A DNA stretch of 64,000 nucleotides from Octopus sinensis (GCF_006345805.1 NC_043001.1:133300001-133364000), one strand, 5' to 3'; shown: positions 19,598 through 61,815, numbered from the stretch's first letter. Notes: generated by a model from the sequence alone, not told the origin. Made by a program: numbers and translations.

Positions 19598-19634
19598 ATG
19601 GATATAAAATTTTTCTGTTTGTTGGTGATACTAT
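19598..19634 (+). CDS. Host gene coding exon 1: start of signal peptide (MDIKFFCLLVIL) of a predicted GPI-anchored two-Ig-domain protein
   Basis: Polypyrimidine acceptor ttttctttttctttttttcccag|GTCATG; ATG at 19598; donor T|gtaagt at 19635; phase 1; hydrophobic peptide. Confidence 0.8.
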
Positions 19635-19904
19635 GTAAGTTACTATTCCGGTTAAATCATTGTCCATCTGTCCATCCATCCTTAACTCTAACTTTAATCC
19701 TAATCCTAACCCTATAAAATCCATTTATCCATCTTGTTGTTATTAACATCCACTTTTCAATGCTTATATATTTGAGGACAAACTTTTTTGGGGCGTCATT
19801 GCTGCATTTTTTTGCTAACTCTGTATAATCTTTGTTCCAGAAAATAATAATGCATGTGAATATATATACATATATGCATGTATATATATATATTATATAT
19901 ATAC

Positions 19905-19952
<48 letters not shown>

Positions 19953-20000
19953 GACGATGATGATGATGATGATGATGATGATATATATATATATATATAT

Positions 20001-20231
20001 AAGGCGAGCTGGCAGAAACATTAGCATACCGGGCAAAATGCGTAGCCGTATTTTGTCTGCCGTTACATTCTGAGTTCAAATTCCGTCGAGGTCGACTTTG
20101 CCTTTCATCCTTTCGGGGTCGATAAATTAAGTACCAGTTATGCACTGGGGGCGATGTAATCGACTTAATCCGTTTGTCTGTCCTTGTTTGTCCCTTCTGT
20201 GTTTAGCCCCTTGTGGGTAGTAAAGAAATAT
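20001..20231 (+). mobile_element. SINE family C
   Basis: ggcgagctggcagaa head, gagttcaaattcc B-box, gactttgcctttcatcctttcggggtcgat core, agccccttgtgggtagtaaagaaata tail. Confidence 0.9.
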
Positions 20232-20280
<49 letters not shown>

Positions 20281-20639
20281 ATGTATGTATATATTATTTA
20301 TATTATTATTTGATTGAACTCCACACATCCATTTCGAAGTAAGTTTATATGTATATATATATACACACAAATATACCAGGTTTAGTTAGAAGTTTATTCA
20401 GATTTTCACTTCCAATCAACACCTCCATAAGCTTGGCCTTGTGAACAGAAACTATCATGAAGCTCCTCAGGAACTGACCAATGACCAAGCTCAACAACAT
20501 ATGAACATTTACAAGCAACTGCTAACAAATCCACGAGATATGCCTAAACTGACCTCACCAGTGCTGGTACCACATAAAAAGCACTCAGTCCATTCTGTAA
20601 GTTGGCATTAGGAAGAGCATTCAGTCACAGAATCCATCA

Positions 20640-21195
20640 TCATCATCATTGTTTGACCGTGGTCGAGACAATGGAATTTACCATGCTACGCCAGACTTCA
20701 CGGTCCATCATGGCATTACGGAGGTCCTGTTGCTGGATGCCTGTATCCCTGGAGATTACATCAGGGTAGGAGAGTGTGCACCCGCTGGTATTGCGAGTAG
20801 ATGGCTTCCAGAGGAGAAGAGTAGAAATTACTTCTTTTTCAGCTCTATAACAATGTCCAGCAAACTGGACTCTCCTACCTTTCACAAGAGATGACACAGG
20901 TGGTAGTTTCCCATATATTTGCATTTTGGTTGGATGACGCTTCCACGAGAGATTTTGAGCTCTCATAAGGAGGCGAGTGTAGGTTCCATCCAACCGCCTC
21001 TCAAGCTTCTTTGATAGCATCCAGGTTTCTGAGTCATATAGTAGAATTGGTTCGACTGTGGCTTTGAAGATTTCAAGTTTGAAGTCTCTACTTAGATTTG
21101 ATGACCAGATCTTATGCATGTCATTACAGAATCCATACCAAAACAGGCAGTGAATTCTGGTGCAGTTTTCTCGCTTGCCAGCTCCTATCAAACCA
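20640..21195 (-). mobile_element. RTE-like LINE 3' fragment with (TGA)n tail
   Basis: ORF 20646-21191: PILLYDSETW..AGHCYR..DREVWR. Confidence 0.85.
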
Positions 21196-21289
21196 TCCAG
21201 CCCAAGCCATCATGGAAAACAGTTGTGTGATGATGATGATGTGCATATGTGTGTGTGTGTATATTAGTTATGTTTAATAAAAAATAACT

Positions 21290-57799: not shown

Positions 57800-58183
57800 C
57801 ACACATTCTGTGATACACACATATTCCACGATGCACACATTCCGCAATGCACACATTCCGCGATGCACACATTCCACGATGCACACATTCCACGATGCAC
57901 ACATTCCATGAAGCACACATTCCGCGATGCACACATTCCACGATGCACACATTCCGCGATGCATACATTCCATGAAGCACACATTCCGCGATGCACACAT
58001 TCCACGATGCACACATTCCGCGATGCATACATTCCATGAAGCACACATTCCGCGATGCACACATTCCGCGATGCATACATTCCATGAAGCACACATTCCG
58101 CGATGCACACATTCCGCGATGCATACATTCCACGAAGCACATATTCTGCAATGCACACATTCCGCGATGCACAAATTCTACGA
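57800..58183. repeat. 16-bp minisatellite (gcacacattccrcgat)n, ~24 units
   Basis: Direct reading. Confidence 0.95.
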
Positions 58184-59364
58184 CAACTCGTTTCACTAAA
58201 ACAGCTAAATTCATGTGCATATCTTTTTGACTGTTCTTTATTATTATTCATATTTTGCATGTACTTTTTATTGTTCACTTTGAAAATACCTGTATTGTTG
58301 CATACAATACACCTTTCCTCACAGCCTGGCCTTGCACACACATCTGCATACTTTGTTCATACACACACAAATGCTATCTCTGTTGCATTCATGCACCACA
58401 CATGCCTTTCTCGCTTGCTTTCCATACTCAATGCGCCCTCGTAGACACAACTCATCTCTGTAAGACCCTAGGTCGGTCACACACACATAGAGAAGCCTGT
58501 TTGTCTCTTATGATGCGCCAGCATGTCACCCTTTCACTCCTGCACGATCGAGGCATATAATACCTCATGCACCAGCTGGCGGCCTCAGCCTTACTGCATT
58601 AATCAATGGCATATTCAATGCTGTACACTGTATTTGTAATCAATGCATTAGCCTCAGCCTTGCAACCTCTATTGCACTCATGCACATGCAACTCTATTAT
58701 GCATCTACTGCCTTATTTTGCAACACGTCTGCTTCAGCTCAATTCTTCTCCCGACTCGAAGCATGTCGGATGATCACATGCTCTGCACTCATGTTTAGAC
58801 ATAATTTCCCCCTGTTAGGCCCCCGTTTGGTCACATAATTAACAGAGAAAATTATCTGTCTCGCACGTCACTCCAGCATGCTCTACTGTCGCCCTTACTA
58901 ACTCAGCAATTAACTATGACAACAGCACCAGATGCATTTCACCTTCAAGGCATTTCAAACACTGCAACCCTGCAGGAAGATCTTTCATATCATGGATTGA
59001 GAATGCACTCACTCGCTCATCTCAGCTTATTTTACAGTCTATTTTGAAACGTGCACCTGCACTCTTGCATATGCCCTCACATGCACACATGCGCTCATTT
59101 GTCACTGACTGCACACATTTTGGCATGCAAAGCGACACCGCTATTCGAACTAATCCGAATAGAAATCTGTCCCGTATACACTTCAACGATCCTCTCTCCT
59201 GATATGCAAAATTTCTCCTTTACTATGCATTTCTTTGTCTCCTTCGATCGTTCGCTTCCTCTCCACGAAGCTCACTGGCAAGGGGAGTGTTGTAGTGAAT
59301 CTTGCATGCATGAAGTGGATTTGATCCACCATAGCCAAATTTAAATTAACACGACAGGCACCCG

Positions 59365-59732
59365 TGCCAACCCCCTTTACTTGTGAAGACATGTTGGGGC
59401 AAGTGAAATCGAAATCGAAATCGAACCAAACCTATGACTGGCACCCGGCAGATGCCAGGACCCCTGGACTGGTGGTACGTAAAAAGCACCAATCCGACCA
59501 TGGCCGTTGCCAGCCTCGCCTGGCACCTGTGCGGGTGGCACGTAAAAAGCACCCACTACACTCACGGAGTGGTTGGCGTTAGGAAGGGCATCCAGCTGTA
59601 GAAACATTGCCAGATAAGACTGGAGCCTGGTGCAGCCTTCTGGCTTCCCAGATCCCCGGTCGAACCGTCCAACCCATGCTAGCATGGAGAACGGACGTTA
59701 AACGATGATGATGATGATGATGATGATGATGA
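59365..59732 (+). mobile_element. Family D inserted in the 3' LTR
   Basis: D modules and (TGA)n tail. Confidence 0.85.
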
Positions 59733-59977
59733 CTGCTACAGAACTTTTCCCACACTGTGCATCCTTCACATCTTACAACTTGCCATCCTTCAGTATGCAA
59801 TCATAATAACAACAAACACTTATCGTTACAAAACATTATCGTTACAACTGCTGAAACTGACATTATCATAATATTGTGTTGCTAATCAATTAAAACCGTT
59901 ACACAGAGATAAGAACTAAAGCTAAGAAACTCATCACCATTTCTCTCTGATTTTAATAATGTGTATATAGATAAAAT

Positions 59978-60290
59978 TGTGGAGGTGCAATGGCCTAGTG
60001 GTTAGGGCAGCGGACTCGCAGTCGCAGGATCACGGTTTCGATTCCCAGACCGTGCGCTGTGTGTGTTTATTGAGAGAAAACACCTAAAAGCTCCATGAGG
60101 CTCCGGCAGGGGGTGGTGATCCCTGCTGTACTCTTTCACCACTCTTTCTCTCACTCTTTCTTCTGTTGACCTGCTCGCTTAGCCAGCGGGGTGGCATCAT
60201 TCGAAGGCTAAAACAATGCGAACGCATTGTGACCAGCGATGTGTAGCAACATCTGATGGTCTGGTCAGTCATGTGATCACGTGATATAGA
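59978..60290 (+). mobile_element. SINE with B head and a third alternative tail
   Basis: Head as B; diverges after ctctttcaccac..ctctcactct. Confidence 0.75.
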
Positions 60291-60582
60291 TAAAATTATA
60301 ACTTGCAGCCTTATAATTTGTAAGCTCATGTCCTGTTTCACTCTGTCTCAACTGGAACCTTTAATTCATGATGAAAAGCTTGCTGAAAACTTTCCAAGTG
60401 TTGATGTAGCTCTTGGAATATATTTGATTTTGATGGTCACTAGTTGTTCAGGAAAGAGGTTATTCAGTAAATTGGGGCTGATTAAGAATTCTTAATCGTC
60501 CAACTGAGAACCACAATAACACATGAAAGACTAAAGGCCCTGTACCTTTTGGATGCAGAGTGCAATGTTCTAAAATGATACA

Positions 60583-60781
60583 TCATCATCATCATCATCA
60601 TCGTTTAACGTCCGTTCTCCATGCTAGCATGGGTTGGACGGTTCGACCGGGGTCTGGGAAGCCAGGGGCTGCACCAGGCTCCAGTCTGATCTGGCAGAGT
60701 TTCAACGGCTGGATGCCCTTCCTAACGCCAACCACTCCGTGAGTGTAGTGGGTGCTTTTTACGTGCCACCTGCACAGGTGT
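60583..60781 (-). mobile_element. Family D
   Basis: Family motifs. Confidence 0.9.
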
Positions 60782-61549
60782 TTAAGGAAATCATTAAAGA
60801 TTTTCCAGATGCAAAGTGTTGAAAGAAAGACTTTTTGCAGGTATTGTAGCAGTATGTAGTGGTAAAATAGTAAAACTGTACTTAGTTTAGATGATAAATT
60901 TTGCATTGACAGATACATTTAAACTTTTAATATGCCAACTAGACAATTTCATTTGCACACAATTGATGGGTGTTGAGATGTAAGTTTGGTGATTTGTCAT
61001 AGATTTTTATTGTTGTGTATGAGGATCCTACCAAACTTGAAGTAACCTGGGACCCTGCTAGGTTTAAATTTAGGCCTGCATCTACCCACTGTAGTCTACT
61101 GTAGTTCCTTACCACTTTACCTTTCCACAGCTCTCTGCTTCATTAGTTTTCTAACCACTGTTAACGTTGCATTAGATCCTCACTATAATACCTTTCTACA
61201 ACCTTTTACCCCATTTACCAACAACTGACTGTTAGCCTACCATAGTTCATATCCACAATACTTTTTCACATCATTAGTCTATTTCGGTCATCCTCTTCAA
61301 ACCATCCACCACAGACTTCTAATACCACTGCAATAGTACCTACCCCTTTTAACTTGTTGTGTACTAGCTACTCTTAATTAAACTACTCAATTCACTTGTC
61401 CCTTGTCTTCCTTTTGACTTTATATACTATATTCAGCACATTACCCAATCATTTCTCTCATAAATGCAACAATCTGGTATCCTACGTTTCCATATTTTCC
61501 ACTCAAAGCTTATAATACAAAGTTTTTCATTTCATTGGTGTCTTTGCAG

Positions 61550-61815
61550 GTAACATTCCATCTGCTACAACATCAGATTTCTACACATCTGTGTACATTG
61601 AAAGTTCATCAATTAATGATAATGTCAATACAACTGAAATTAATGATAATGTCAATACAACAAAATCTTTTGTAGGTCGCCTTTCACAGTCAACAATATT
61701 ACAATCAACACCAACCACTACAAAAGAATCTTCAGCAGATGGTAAAACTAAACAAATAAATTGCATCAGTATTATCATTGCGGTTCTTATTATTATTGGT
61801 GTCGTGGACACCTAA
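61550..61815 (+). CDS. Host gene terminal coding exon: Ser/Thr-rich stalk plus hydrophobic C-terminal GPI-type signal (..ESSADGKTKQINCISIIIAVLIIIGVVDT*)
   Basis: tctttgcag| acceptor, phase 1, 266 nt to TAA; in frame with track ORF 61591-61815. Confidence 0.8.

Follow-up and report, generated by a model that had tools for sequence, protein, structure and literature searches.

LOC115211991 of Octopus sinensis encodes a predicted two-immunoglobulin-domain glycoprotein, probably GPI-anchored, of an octopod-restricted family

The stretch analysed here, called the window below, is 64,000 nucleotides (nt) of Octopus sinensis DNA (GCF_006345805.1, NC_043001.1:133300001-133364000) and holds, on the plus strand, the coding exons of the uncharacterized gene LOC115211991. 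Rebuilding the gene from stop-free stretches and splice signals joined six exons, with phases 1,1,1,0,1, into one open reading frame (ORF) of 849 nt, or 282 amino acids (aa). AG acceptors and GT donors are used throughout, and polypyrimidine tracts precede the four internal acceptors and the acceptor of the sixth exon. The product contains ten Cys and eight N-x-S/T sequons, and coding sequence makes up 2.0% (849/42218) of the span 19598-61815. Along its entire length (100%), the 282-aa product shows 100% identity to the O. sinensis protein XP_029636631.1, which RefSeq names "uncharacterized protein LOC115211991 isoform X2"; the locus lies at ~133.30 Mb on chromosome record CM016863.1 of assembly GCA_006345805.1. 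An earlier note on the same DNA had proposed these exons with their splice sites, phases and 282-aa ORF, and had counted 8 sequons, a CDRTC loop, a 15-aa hydrophobic tail, an S-S-A triplet 28 residues from the end and a coding share of ~2%; all of these were reproduced. It had also called the gene missed, which is true of a prokaryote-style ORF track only: LOC115211991 is already in the databases as a RefSeq model with an orthologue and many paralogues, and was therefore not missed by annotators. Literature searches by LOC, XP and UniProt identifiers, and for octopus immunoglobulin (Ig)-like lineage-specific families, found no publication on LOC115211991 or its family.

The second exon of the transcript (E1, 19595..19634) begins at the acceptor cccag/GTC (19594/19595) and carries the isoform X2 start codon at 19598; its coding part (19598-19634) encodes MDIKFFCLLVIL plus 1 nt, corresponding to the n- and h-regions of the predicted signal peptide, and ends in phase 1 at the donor T/gtaagt. 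E2 (34331..34372, 42 nt, phase 1-1) encodes (Y)STSGSNSFKIIQ(N), the end of the predicted signal peptide and the start of the mature protein, and the first sequon, N26-E-T, arises at the E2/E3 junction. From the sequence of the window, E2 is ambiguous, as the 19-kb interval holds 20 stop-free AG..GT candidates of its size and phase; the candidate chosen in the earlier note is nevertheless the right one, because the full-length product is identical to the RefSeq protein and the O. bimaculoides orthologue has the same six exons in the same order. E3 (38781..39029, 249 nt, phase 1-1) encodes Ig-like domain 1 (residues 27-109), with the CDRTC motif at 38879-38893. E4 (52275..52375, 101 nt, phase 1-0) encodes the first third of domain 2 (residues 110-143, including C122, C130 and C139), and E5 (53819..53972, 154 nt, phase 0-1) the remainder, that is, residues 144-194 with C156 and C177, plus 1 nt of C195. 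E6, the last coding exon (61550..61815), completes C195 and then encodes the stalk (residues 196-265), the candidate region of the omega site for glycosylphosphatidylinositol (GPI) attachment (S255-S256-A257, 61729-61737), the spacer DGKTKQIN, the hydrophobic tail (61762-61806), D-T and the TAA stop (61813-61815). All six exons are on the plus strand.

Annotated isoforms extend this model at both ends. Isoform X1 (284 aa) is X2 with an N-terminal 'MV'; its ATG consists of the last three bases of an upstream exon (ATG/gtgagt) that lies 2.56 kb before the start of the window (L001:10001, which is window position -2556) and joins the acceptor at 19594/19595. The gene therefore begins upstream of the span 19598-61815 put forward in the earlier note, and everything up to 61815 lies inside the window; those limits are exact for the coding exons of X2. 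Isoform X4 (209 aa) exchanges E6 for an alternative terminal coding exon on the plus strand (57179..57219), which reads …EVN-SAETDRHYHNIVY to its stop, and thus has neither C195, stalk nor tail. The X4 acceptor is within a dispersed repeat (57083-57192), of which a 95% identical second copy (59752-59861) stands 2.7 kb further downstream; the first copy supplies the acceptor and the first codons of the exon, which looks like the exonisation of a repeat. No annotated isoform contains a downstream transmembrane or cytoplasmic exon; splicing on to such an exon in the only isoform would have spoken against the architecture proposed earlier.

The fold of the product was predicted with AlphaFold2 from a 23-row family alignment that included 16 single domain-1 repeats from paralogues; an earlier run on a 7-row alignment had left domain 1 below 50 in predicted local distance difference test score (pLDDT) and was not usable. 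In the model retained, domain 1 (27-109; pLDDT 75-88) has 8 strands within residues 23-105 and domain 2 (110-195; pLDDT 68-82) has 8 strands within 113-193, so that each falls within the seven to nine strands of a Greek-key beta-sandwich. The stalk (196-265) is predicted to be disordered (pLDDT <50) and residues 266-280 to be helical. Foldseek against the PDB returned 712 matches at E<=1e-3, and the top 50 are all Ig-domain proteins: Fab light chains, BTN3A1/BTN2A1 IgV-IgC, Dpr4 Ig1-2, NCAM2 Ig1-2, Neph1 D1-D2, titin and T-cell receptor (TCR) chains are among the best, with alignments of about 190-220 columns at probability 1.00 and E down to 2.6e-7. Similar matches, and in addition KIT, CD80, CD200R, RAGE and NEGR1, were obtained with the weaker first model. 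The Ig-like fold suggested in the earlier note thus agrees with two predicted beta-sandwich domains whose top matches are two-domain Ig ectodomains; by fold prediction, domain 1 is V/I-like and domain 2 C-type-like.

Sequence profiles point towards a link between domain 1 and canonical Ig domains. Aligned with hhalign to canonical Ig repeats (probability 73%, E 3e-5), T39 falls at the position of the B-strand Cys and W51 at that of the C-strand Trp, and the Pfam I-set model matches a domain-1-type repeat of the paralogue P0009 at 35.5 bits (cut-off 23.7). The earlier note had placed T and F at the two usual Cys positions of domain 1. T39 is borne out by the alignment, whereas F94 is placed at the F-strand position by the E-x3-W-x-F spacing and a predicted strand and not by alignment. 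Domain 1 therefore departs from the canonical pattern of a B-F disulfide with a C-strand Trp, having T39/F94 at the Cys positions and keeping the conserved W51. A missing B-F disulfide is common among bona fide members of the Ig superfamily (IgSF), for example in CD2-family V domains, and this departure consequently does not exclude an Ig fold. The CDRTC loop is formed by residues 60-64, and its CxxxC is invariant in the family.

Domain 2 has six Cys (122, 130, 139, 156, 177 and 195, the last spanning the E5/E6 junction), as the earlier note had stated, and these form a conserved family framework: all six are invariant in 7/7 proteins of alignment A1. Across the family, C130, C139, C156 and C177 remain invariant and C122 and C195 are lost jointly in three paralogues, implying that these two residues pair. 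C130 and C177 stand at positions suiting the B and F strands, and C139, not Trp, is in the predicted C strand; its substitution for the C-strand Trp, also claimed previously, follows from motif spacing and predicted strands and not from an alignment. The disulfides of domain 2 are probably C130-C177, C122-C195 and C139-C156. Pfam searches with 12 domain-2 sequences gave a single match, to C2-set_3 (butyrophilin Ig-C), at E 0.074. Other Pfam and PDB sequence matches of the protein and of the family profile (DurB-like, JAG1, podoplanin, fucose lectin, 15-PGDH) lay below cut-offs and were set aside as noise.

In O. bimaculoides, the orthologue LOC106876058 (locus L002) encodes 263 aa in six exons that agree with those of O. 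sinensis in order, boundaries and phases, and the two proteins are about 75% identical. Exon lengths are equal except for E1 (3 nt longer in O. bimaculoides) and E6 (206 nt, against 266 nt in O. sinensis). E1 is identical at 37/37 nt, O. bimaculoides having one extra codon, and E2 at 39/42 nt, with the same AG/GT. The ratio of non-synonymous to synonymous substitution rates (dN/dS, Nei-Gojobori), a check proposed in the earlier note, is 0.71 for the whole protein, 0.48 for domain 1, 1.08 for domain 2 and 0.96 for the stalk; for a paralogue pair the overall ratio is 1.06, with 0.39 in domain 1 and 2.47 in domain 2. Fisher tests do not establish positive selection on domain 2 (p=0.08 for the paralogue pair, 1.0 for LOC115211991 and 0.13 pooled). 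Domain 1 is conserved relative to domain 2 and the stalk, which change at a near-neutral or faster rate, and this suggests a conserved interaction through domain 1. All exon indels between the two species are multiples of 3, the splice sites and the 8 ectodomain Cys are retained, and in a neutral simulation at the observed divergence the probability of finding no stop together with all 8 ectodomain Cys was 0.0012; the gene is therefore maintained, with most surface positions free to change. Relative to O. bimaculoides, the O. sinensis stalk carries a 24-codon insertion, which takes in a 27-nt tandem duplication (61612-61665; INDNVNTTE/INDNVNTTK) and adds two sequons.

Searched exhaustively with a HMMER profile, 1.84 billion cluster representatives yielded 36 proteins at E<=0.001. 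Their sources, where looked up, were Octopus sinensis, O. bimaculoides, O. vulgaris, Argonauta hians or Logan assembly contigs, the sole exception being a fish CD22-like protein of canonical Ig repeats that matches the first half of domain 1 at E 1e-12. Among the members whose source was looked up, the family is thus specific to Octopus and Argonauta, in agreement with the lineage restriction proposed in the earlier note. Members include LOC115225115, LOC115225116, LOC115227428, LOC118763661, LOC106876057/8 and two Argonauta hians proteins; those bearing a name are "uncharacterized" or "hypothetical", save one RefSeq model labelled 'zinc finger protein 239-like' (P0036), in which C2H2 zinc fingers are fused to a domain-1-like segment and which is probably a chimeric gene model. 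The domain that defines the family, here called the octopod CDRTC-domain family, is ~92 residues long, its invariant elements being I-x(7)-L, W, Y-E-C-x3-C, V-T, S-T-L-x-I and W-x-F-x-D, and LOC115211991 fits this definition, as alignments A2 and A3 show. Invariance in A3 extends to the columns of I23, L31, W51, C60, V71 and W92, in full-protein numbering, and C64, F94 and D96 are kept at 90% or more.

Domain 1 is present in 28 copies in 14 proteins and is shared across the family at 36-75% identity. A two-domain subgroup shares domain 2 and the exon plan with LOC115211991 as well, whereas other members lack domain 2 and carry domain 1 as 2-4 tandem repeats. These multi-repeat members also show an additional pair of Cys where LOC115211991 has Y53 and F89, together with a conventional single-pass anchor. 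The paralogues LOC118763661 (O. sinensis) and LOC106876057 (O. bimaculoides) have the 42/249/101/154-163-nt exon series of LOC115211991 and a 119-nt exon equivalent to its stalk-plus-tail exon. In the two-domain paralogues P0008, P0010, P0040 and P0041, the C-terminus is a cluster of three or more hydrophobic segments and not a single anchor. At least nine O. sinensis family loci are on one 21.3-Mb record. LOC106876057 and LOC106876058 are ~0.25 Mb apart in O. bimaculoides (42.01-42.05 and 42.29-42.34 Mb, CM046605.1), whereas their O. sinensis counterparts are 86 Mb apart (47.0 and 133.3 Mb, CM016863.1), a contrast that could be due to rearrangement or to a difference between assemblies.

The two ends of the product bear on its membrane attachment. 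The N-terminus reads, by inspection, MDIK-FFCLLVILY-STSGS, the pattern of a signal peptide, which we infer for the LOC115211991 product. GPI signals combine an N-terminal signal peptide with small residues at omega, omega+1 and omega+2, a polar spacer of ~6-10 residues and a hydrophobic tail of ~10-20 residues at the extreme C-terminus. By inspection, the product has this layout: an S-S-A triplet that starts 28 residues from the end (61729), at S255, is followed by the 8-residue polar spacer, the 15-residue tail CISIIIAVLIIIGVV and D-T. In LOC115211991 and its closest paralogues, 9-15 hydrophobic residues are followed by only 2-8 more and preceded by small residues (SSA; SG in the paralogues), whereas transmembrane paralogues have 23-27 uncharged residues and then K/R-rich tails. 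The stop also differs between species, O. sinensis having TAA where O. bimaculoides has CAA and six more codons; such variation would be easily tolerated if the segment is cleaved off. The C-terminal hydrophobic segment is therefore most likely a GPI-attachment signal, cleaved near S255-A257.

We consider it fairly probable that the main product of LOC115211991 is a small type-I secretory two-Ig glycoprotein with a GPI anchor and a role in adhesion or recognition. The signal peptide would direct the product into the endoplasmic reticulum. The two Ig-like domains would form the ectodomain, and the 70-residue Ser/Thr/Asn-rich stalk (25 Ser/Thr and 8 Asn), disordered and, from its composition, predicted to be glycosylated, would hold both away from the membrane. 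After GPI attachment near S255-A257, the mature protein would reside in the outer leaflet with no cytoplasmic part. Since it would have no signalling tail of its own, it may be a ligand in adhesion or recognition, or else a co-receptor that works through a membrane-spanning partner, and transmembrane members of the same octopod family are candidate partners.

Several observations weigh against this proposal. Neither a Pfam Ig model nor a PDB sequence matches the 282-aa protein itself, and the hhalign comparison of domain 2 with canonical Ig repeats revealed no link at the profile level; the assignment of domain 2 as Ig-like is structural only and comes from a model of medium confidence. The TM-scores of the structural matches are low (0.25-0.41), as the stalk and the domain orientation do not superpose. 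The tail of the O. bimaculoides orthologue (…GVVDAQKYSYG) is equally compatible with a minimal membrane anchor. Isoform X4 would be a secreted form in which one Cys has no partner. Finally, dN/dS is high (about 1 in domain 2 and stalk), and exons are no more similar between the two species than alignable intron flanks (88.7% nucleotide identity in both), indicating weak constraint on most surface residues.

Some of these observations feed alternative explanations. It is rather unlikely, though far from negligible, that the same protein has no GPI anchor and sits in the membrane through its C-terminal hydrophobic segment, as a single-pass type-I protein with hardly any cytoplasmic tail. Such anchoring exists in the family, since the Argonauta two-domain protein P0024 and the multi-repeat paralogues compared have long uncharged C-terminal segments; in addition, the LOC115211991 segment is predicted to be helical, and in O. 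bimaculoides 8 residues, including a Lys, follow the hydrophobic run. The 15 uncharged residues of LOC115211991 nevertheless fall well short of the 23-27 of transmembrane paralogues, D-T and not a basic stop-transfer motif comes after the O. sinensis segment, and the 8 spacer residues that separate SSA from the tail (omega+3 to omega+10) give the spacing expected of a GPI signal.

An improbable alternative is that the two-Ig protein is mainly secreted in soluble form, as X4 or after shedding, and acts as a humoral factor such as an opsonin or a component of mucus or seminal fluid. The fast evolution of the gene would suit such a role and X4, which ends after domain 2, is an annotated form of this type; however, the X4 exon begins in a dispersed repeat and removes C195, which covaries with C122, pointing to a minor or aberrant isoform, and the stalk-plus-tail exon is kept in the orthologue, with its 119-nt equivalent in paralogues. 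That the locus is a decaying or functionless copy, still open by chance, is very improbable: the dN/dS values of 0.71 overall and 1.08 in domain 2 and the equal identity of exons and introns are as such a copy would show, but the frame is open over six exons in two species with in-frame indels and intact splice sites and ectodomain Cys, an outcome of low probability under neutrality (0.0012), and the dN/dS of domain 1 is 0.48.

The earlier note had compared the probably GPI-anchored glycoprotein to CD48 and CD58 of the vertebrate CD2-SLAM family, as a CD48/CD58-like architecture of probably convergent origin. CD48 and CD58 have a disulfide-less distal Ig domain, a proximal Ig domain with extra Cys, heavy N-glycosylation and a GPI anchor, and lack a cytoplasmic domain. 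The octopus protein resembles them in its predicted signal peptide, disulfide-less distal Ig-like domain, Cys-rich proximal domain, sequons, probable GPI anchor and lack of a cytoplasmic part; a disulfide-less distal domain, a Cys-rich proximal domain and a lipid anchor constitute a resemblance of architecture and not membership. It differs from them in the invariant CxxxC loop of domain 1, the six-Cys domain 2, a 70-residue mucin-like stalk and relatives that are octopod only. Phmmer and profile hmmsearch against all PDB chain sequences, a set that presumably contains CD2, CD58 and CD48 chains, gave no Ig-family chain at E<=5; no CD2, CD48, CD58 or SLAM chain was among the top 50 Foldseek matches with either model; and no vertebrate CD2-family protein was recovered in the exhaustive profile search. 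The protein is thus not a member of the CD2 family by these searches, its likeness to CD48/CD58 is in architecture only, and the absence of a detectable sequence relation fits the convergence suggested earlier.

Butyrophilin/B7 proteins (BTN3A1, BTN2A1, CD80, B7-H3) are among the best two-domain structural matches and share the V-then-C order, but their sequence identity to the octopus protein is 12-18% and their TM-scores are at most 0.37. These proteins are transmembrane, often with B30.2, and keep canonical disulfides. Drosophila Dpr/DIP proteins and vertebrate IgLON proteins (NEGR1), neuronal IgSF adhesion proteins that are GPI-linked or short-tailed, are likewise small, Ig-only extracellular members of expanded families, tethered without signalling tails, and Dpr4 Ig1-Ig2 and NEGR1 are among the structural matches; however, they have no sequence relation to the octopus protein. 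In Dpr/DIP and IgLON domains the B-F disulfide is retained, and Pfam Ig models recognise them. Classified cautiously, the octopus protein represents a new lineage-restricted family of the IgSF, with generic V-C two-domain ectodomains as its best structural matches.

The function of LOC115211991 as a recognition molecule is itself inferred, and a broader proposal for the family is doubtful. LOC115211991 would belong to an IgSF family that arose in octopods and whose building block is a disulfide-less Ig domain bearing the invariant CxxxC loop. The family would have diversified in repeat number (1-4), by the addition of modules (the six-Cys domain 2) and in its mode of anchoring (GPI-like, single-pass or by several hydrophobic segments), with the membrane-proximal domain and stalk evolving as fast as neutral sequence or faster (dN/dS 1.1-2.5). 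It could form a recognition system specific to this lineage, in which GPI-linked members serve as ligands or decoys for transmembrane members; if so, the recognition might concern, for example, innate immune sensing, sperm-egg or mucosal recognition, or neuronal identity. To our knowledge, octopods have no antibody-like system, and their molecules for cell-cell and self/non-self recognition are poorly known. Because it is octopod-restricted, fast-evolving and variable in domain number and anchor, the family offers reasonable candidates for work on immunity, reproduction or neural wiring in cephalopods. The finding itself concerns a correctly predicted, already annotated and uncharacterised gene of a familiar protein class. 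As background, genes that originated in the octopod ancestor are reported to reach their highest expression in male reproductive tissue (PMC7656900).

The window as a whole is repeat-rich, AT-rich eukaryotic DNA. Near its start, a 1.1-kb (ATAC)n microsatellite (137-1280; ~286 copies, 90% matches) produces long spurious ORFs on both strands. Retroelement fragments in a GC-richer block at 4-8 kb come next (5877-8660 and 10279-11121 (-)); they comprise an ORF matching DUF7047 (E 2e-23) beside integrase-like and protease-like ORFs, and a minus-strand reverse-transcriptase ORF (RVT_1, E 1.5e-15). The first LOC115211991 intron contains a Helitron-type remnant on the plus strand (13802-17012; Helitron_like_N E 3e-6, PIF1-like helicase E 2e-30). 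Intron 3 holds an element resembling a long interspersed nuclear element (42492-45288), in which a 0.5-kb (AAT)n tract is followed by plus-strand ORFs with matches to RVT_1 (E 5e-15) and, weakly, to zf-RVT (E 3e-4; 21.9 bits, under the 27.5 cut-off); the second ORF has 369 aa. In the last intron, a 16-nt tandem repeat, CACACATTCCGCGATG, is present in ~24 copies (57800-58178) and gives rise to Cys/His-rich pseudo-ORFs on both strands.

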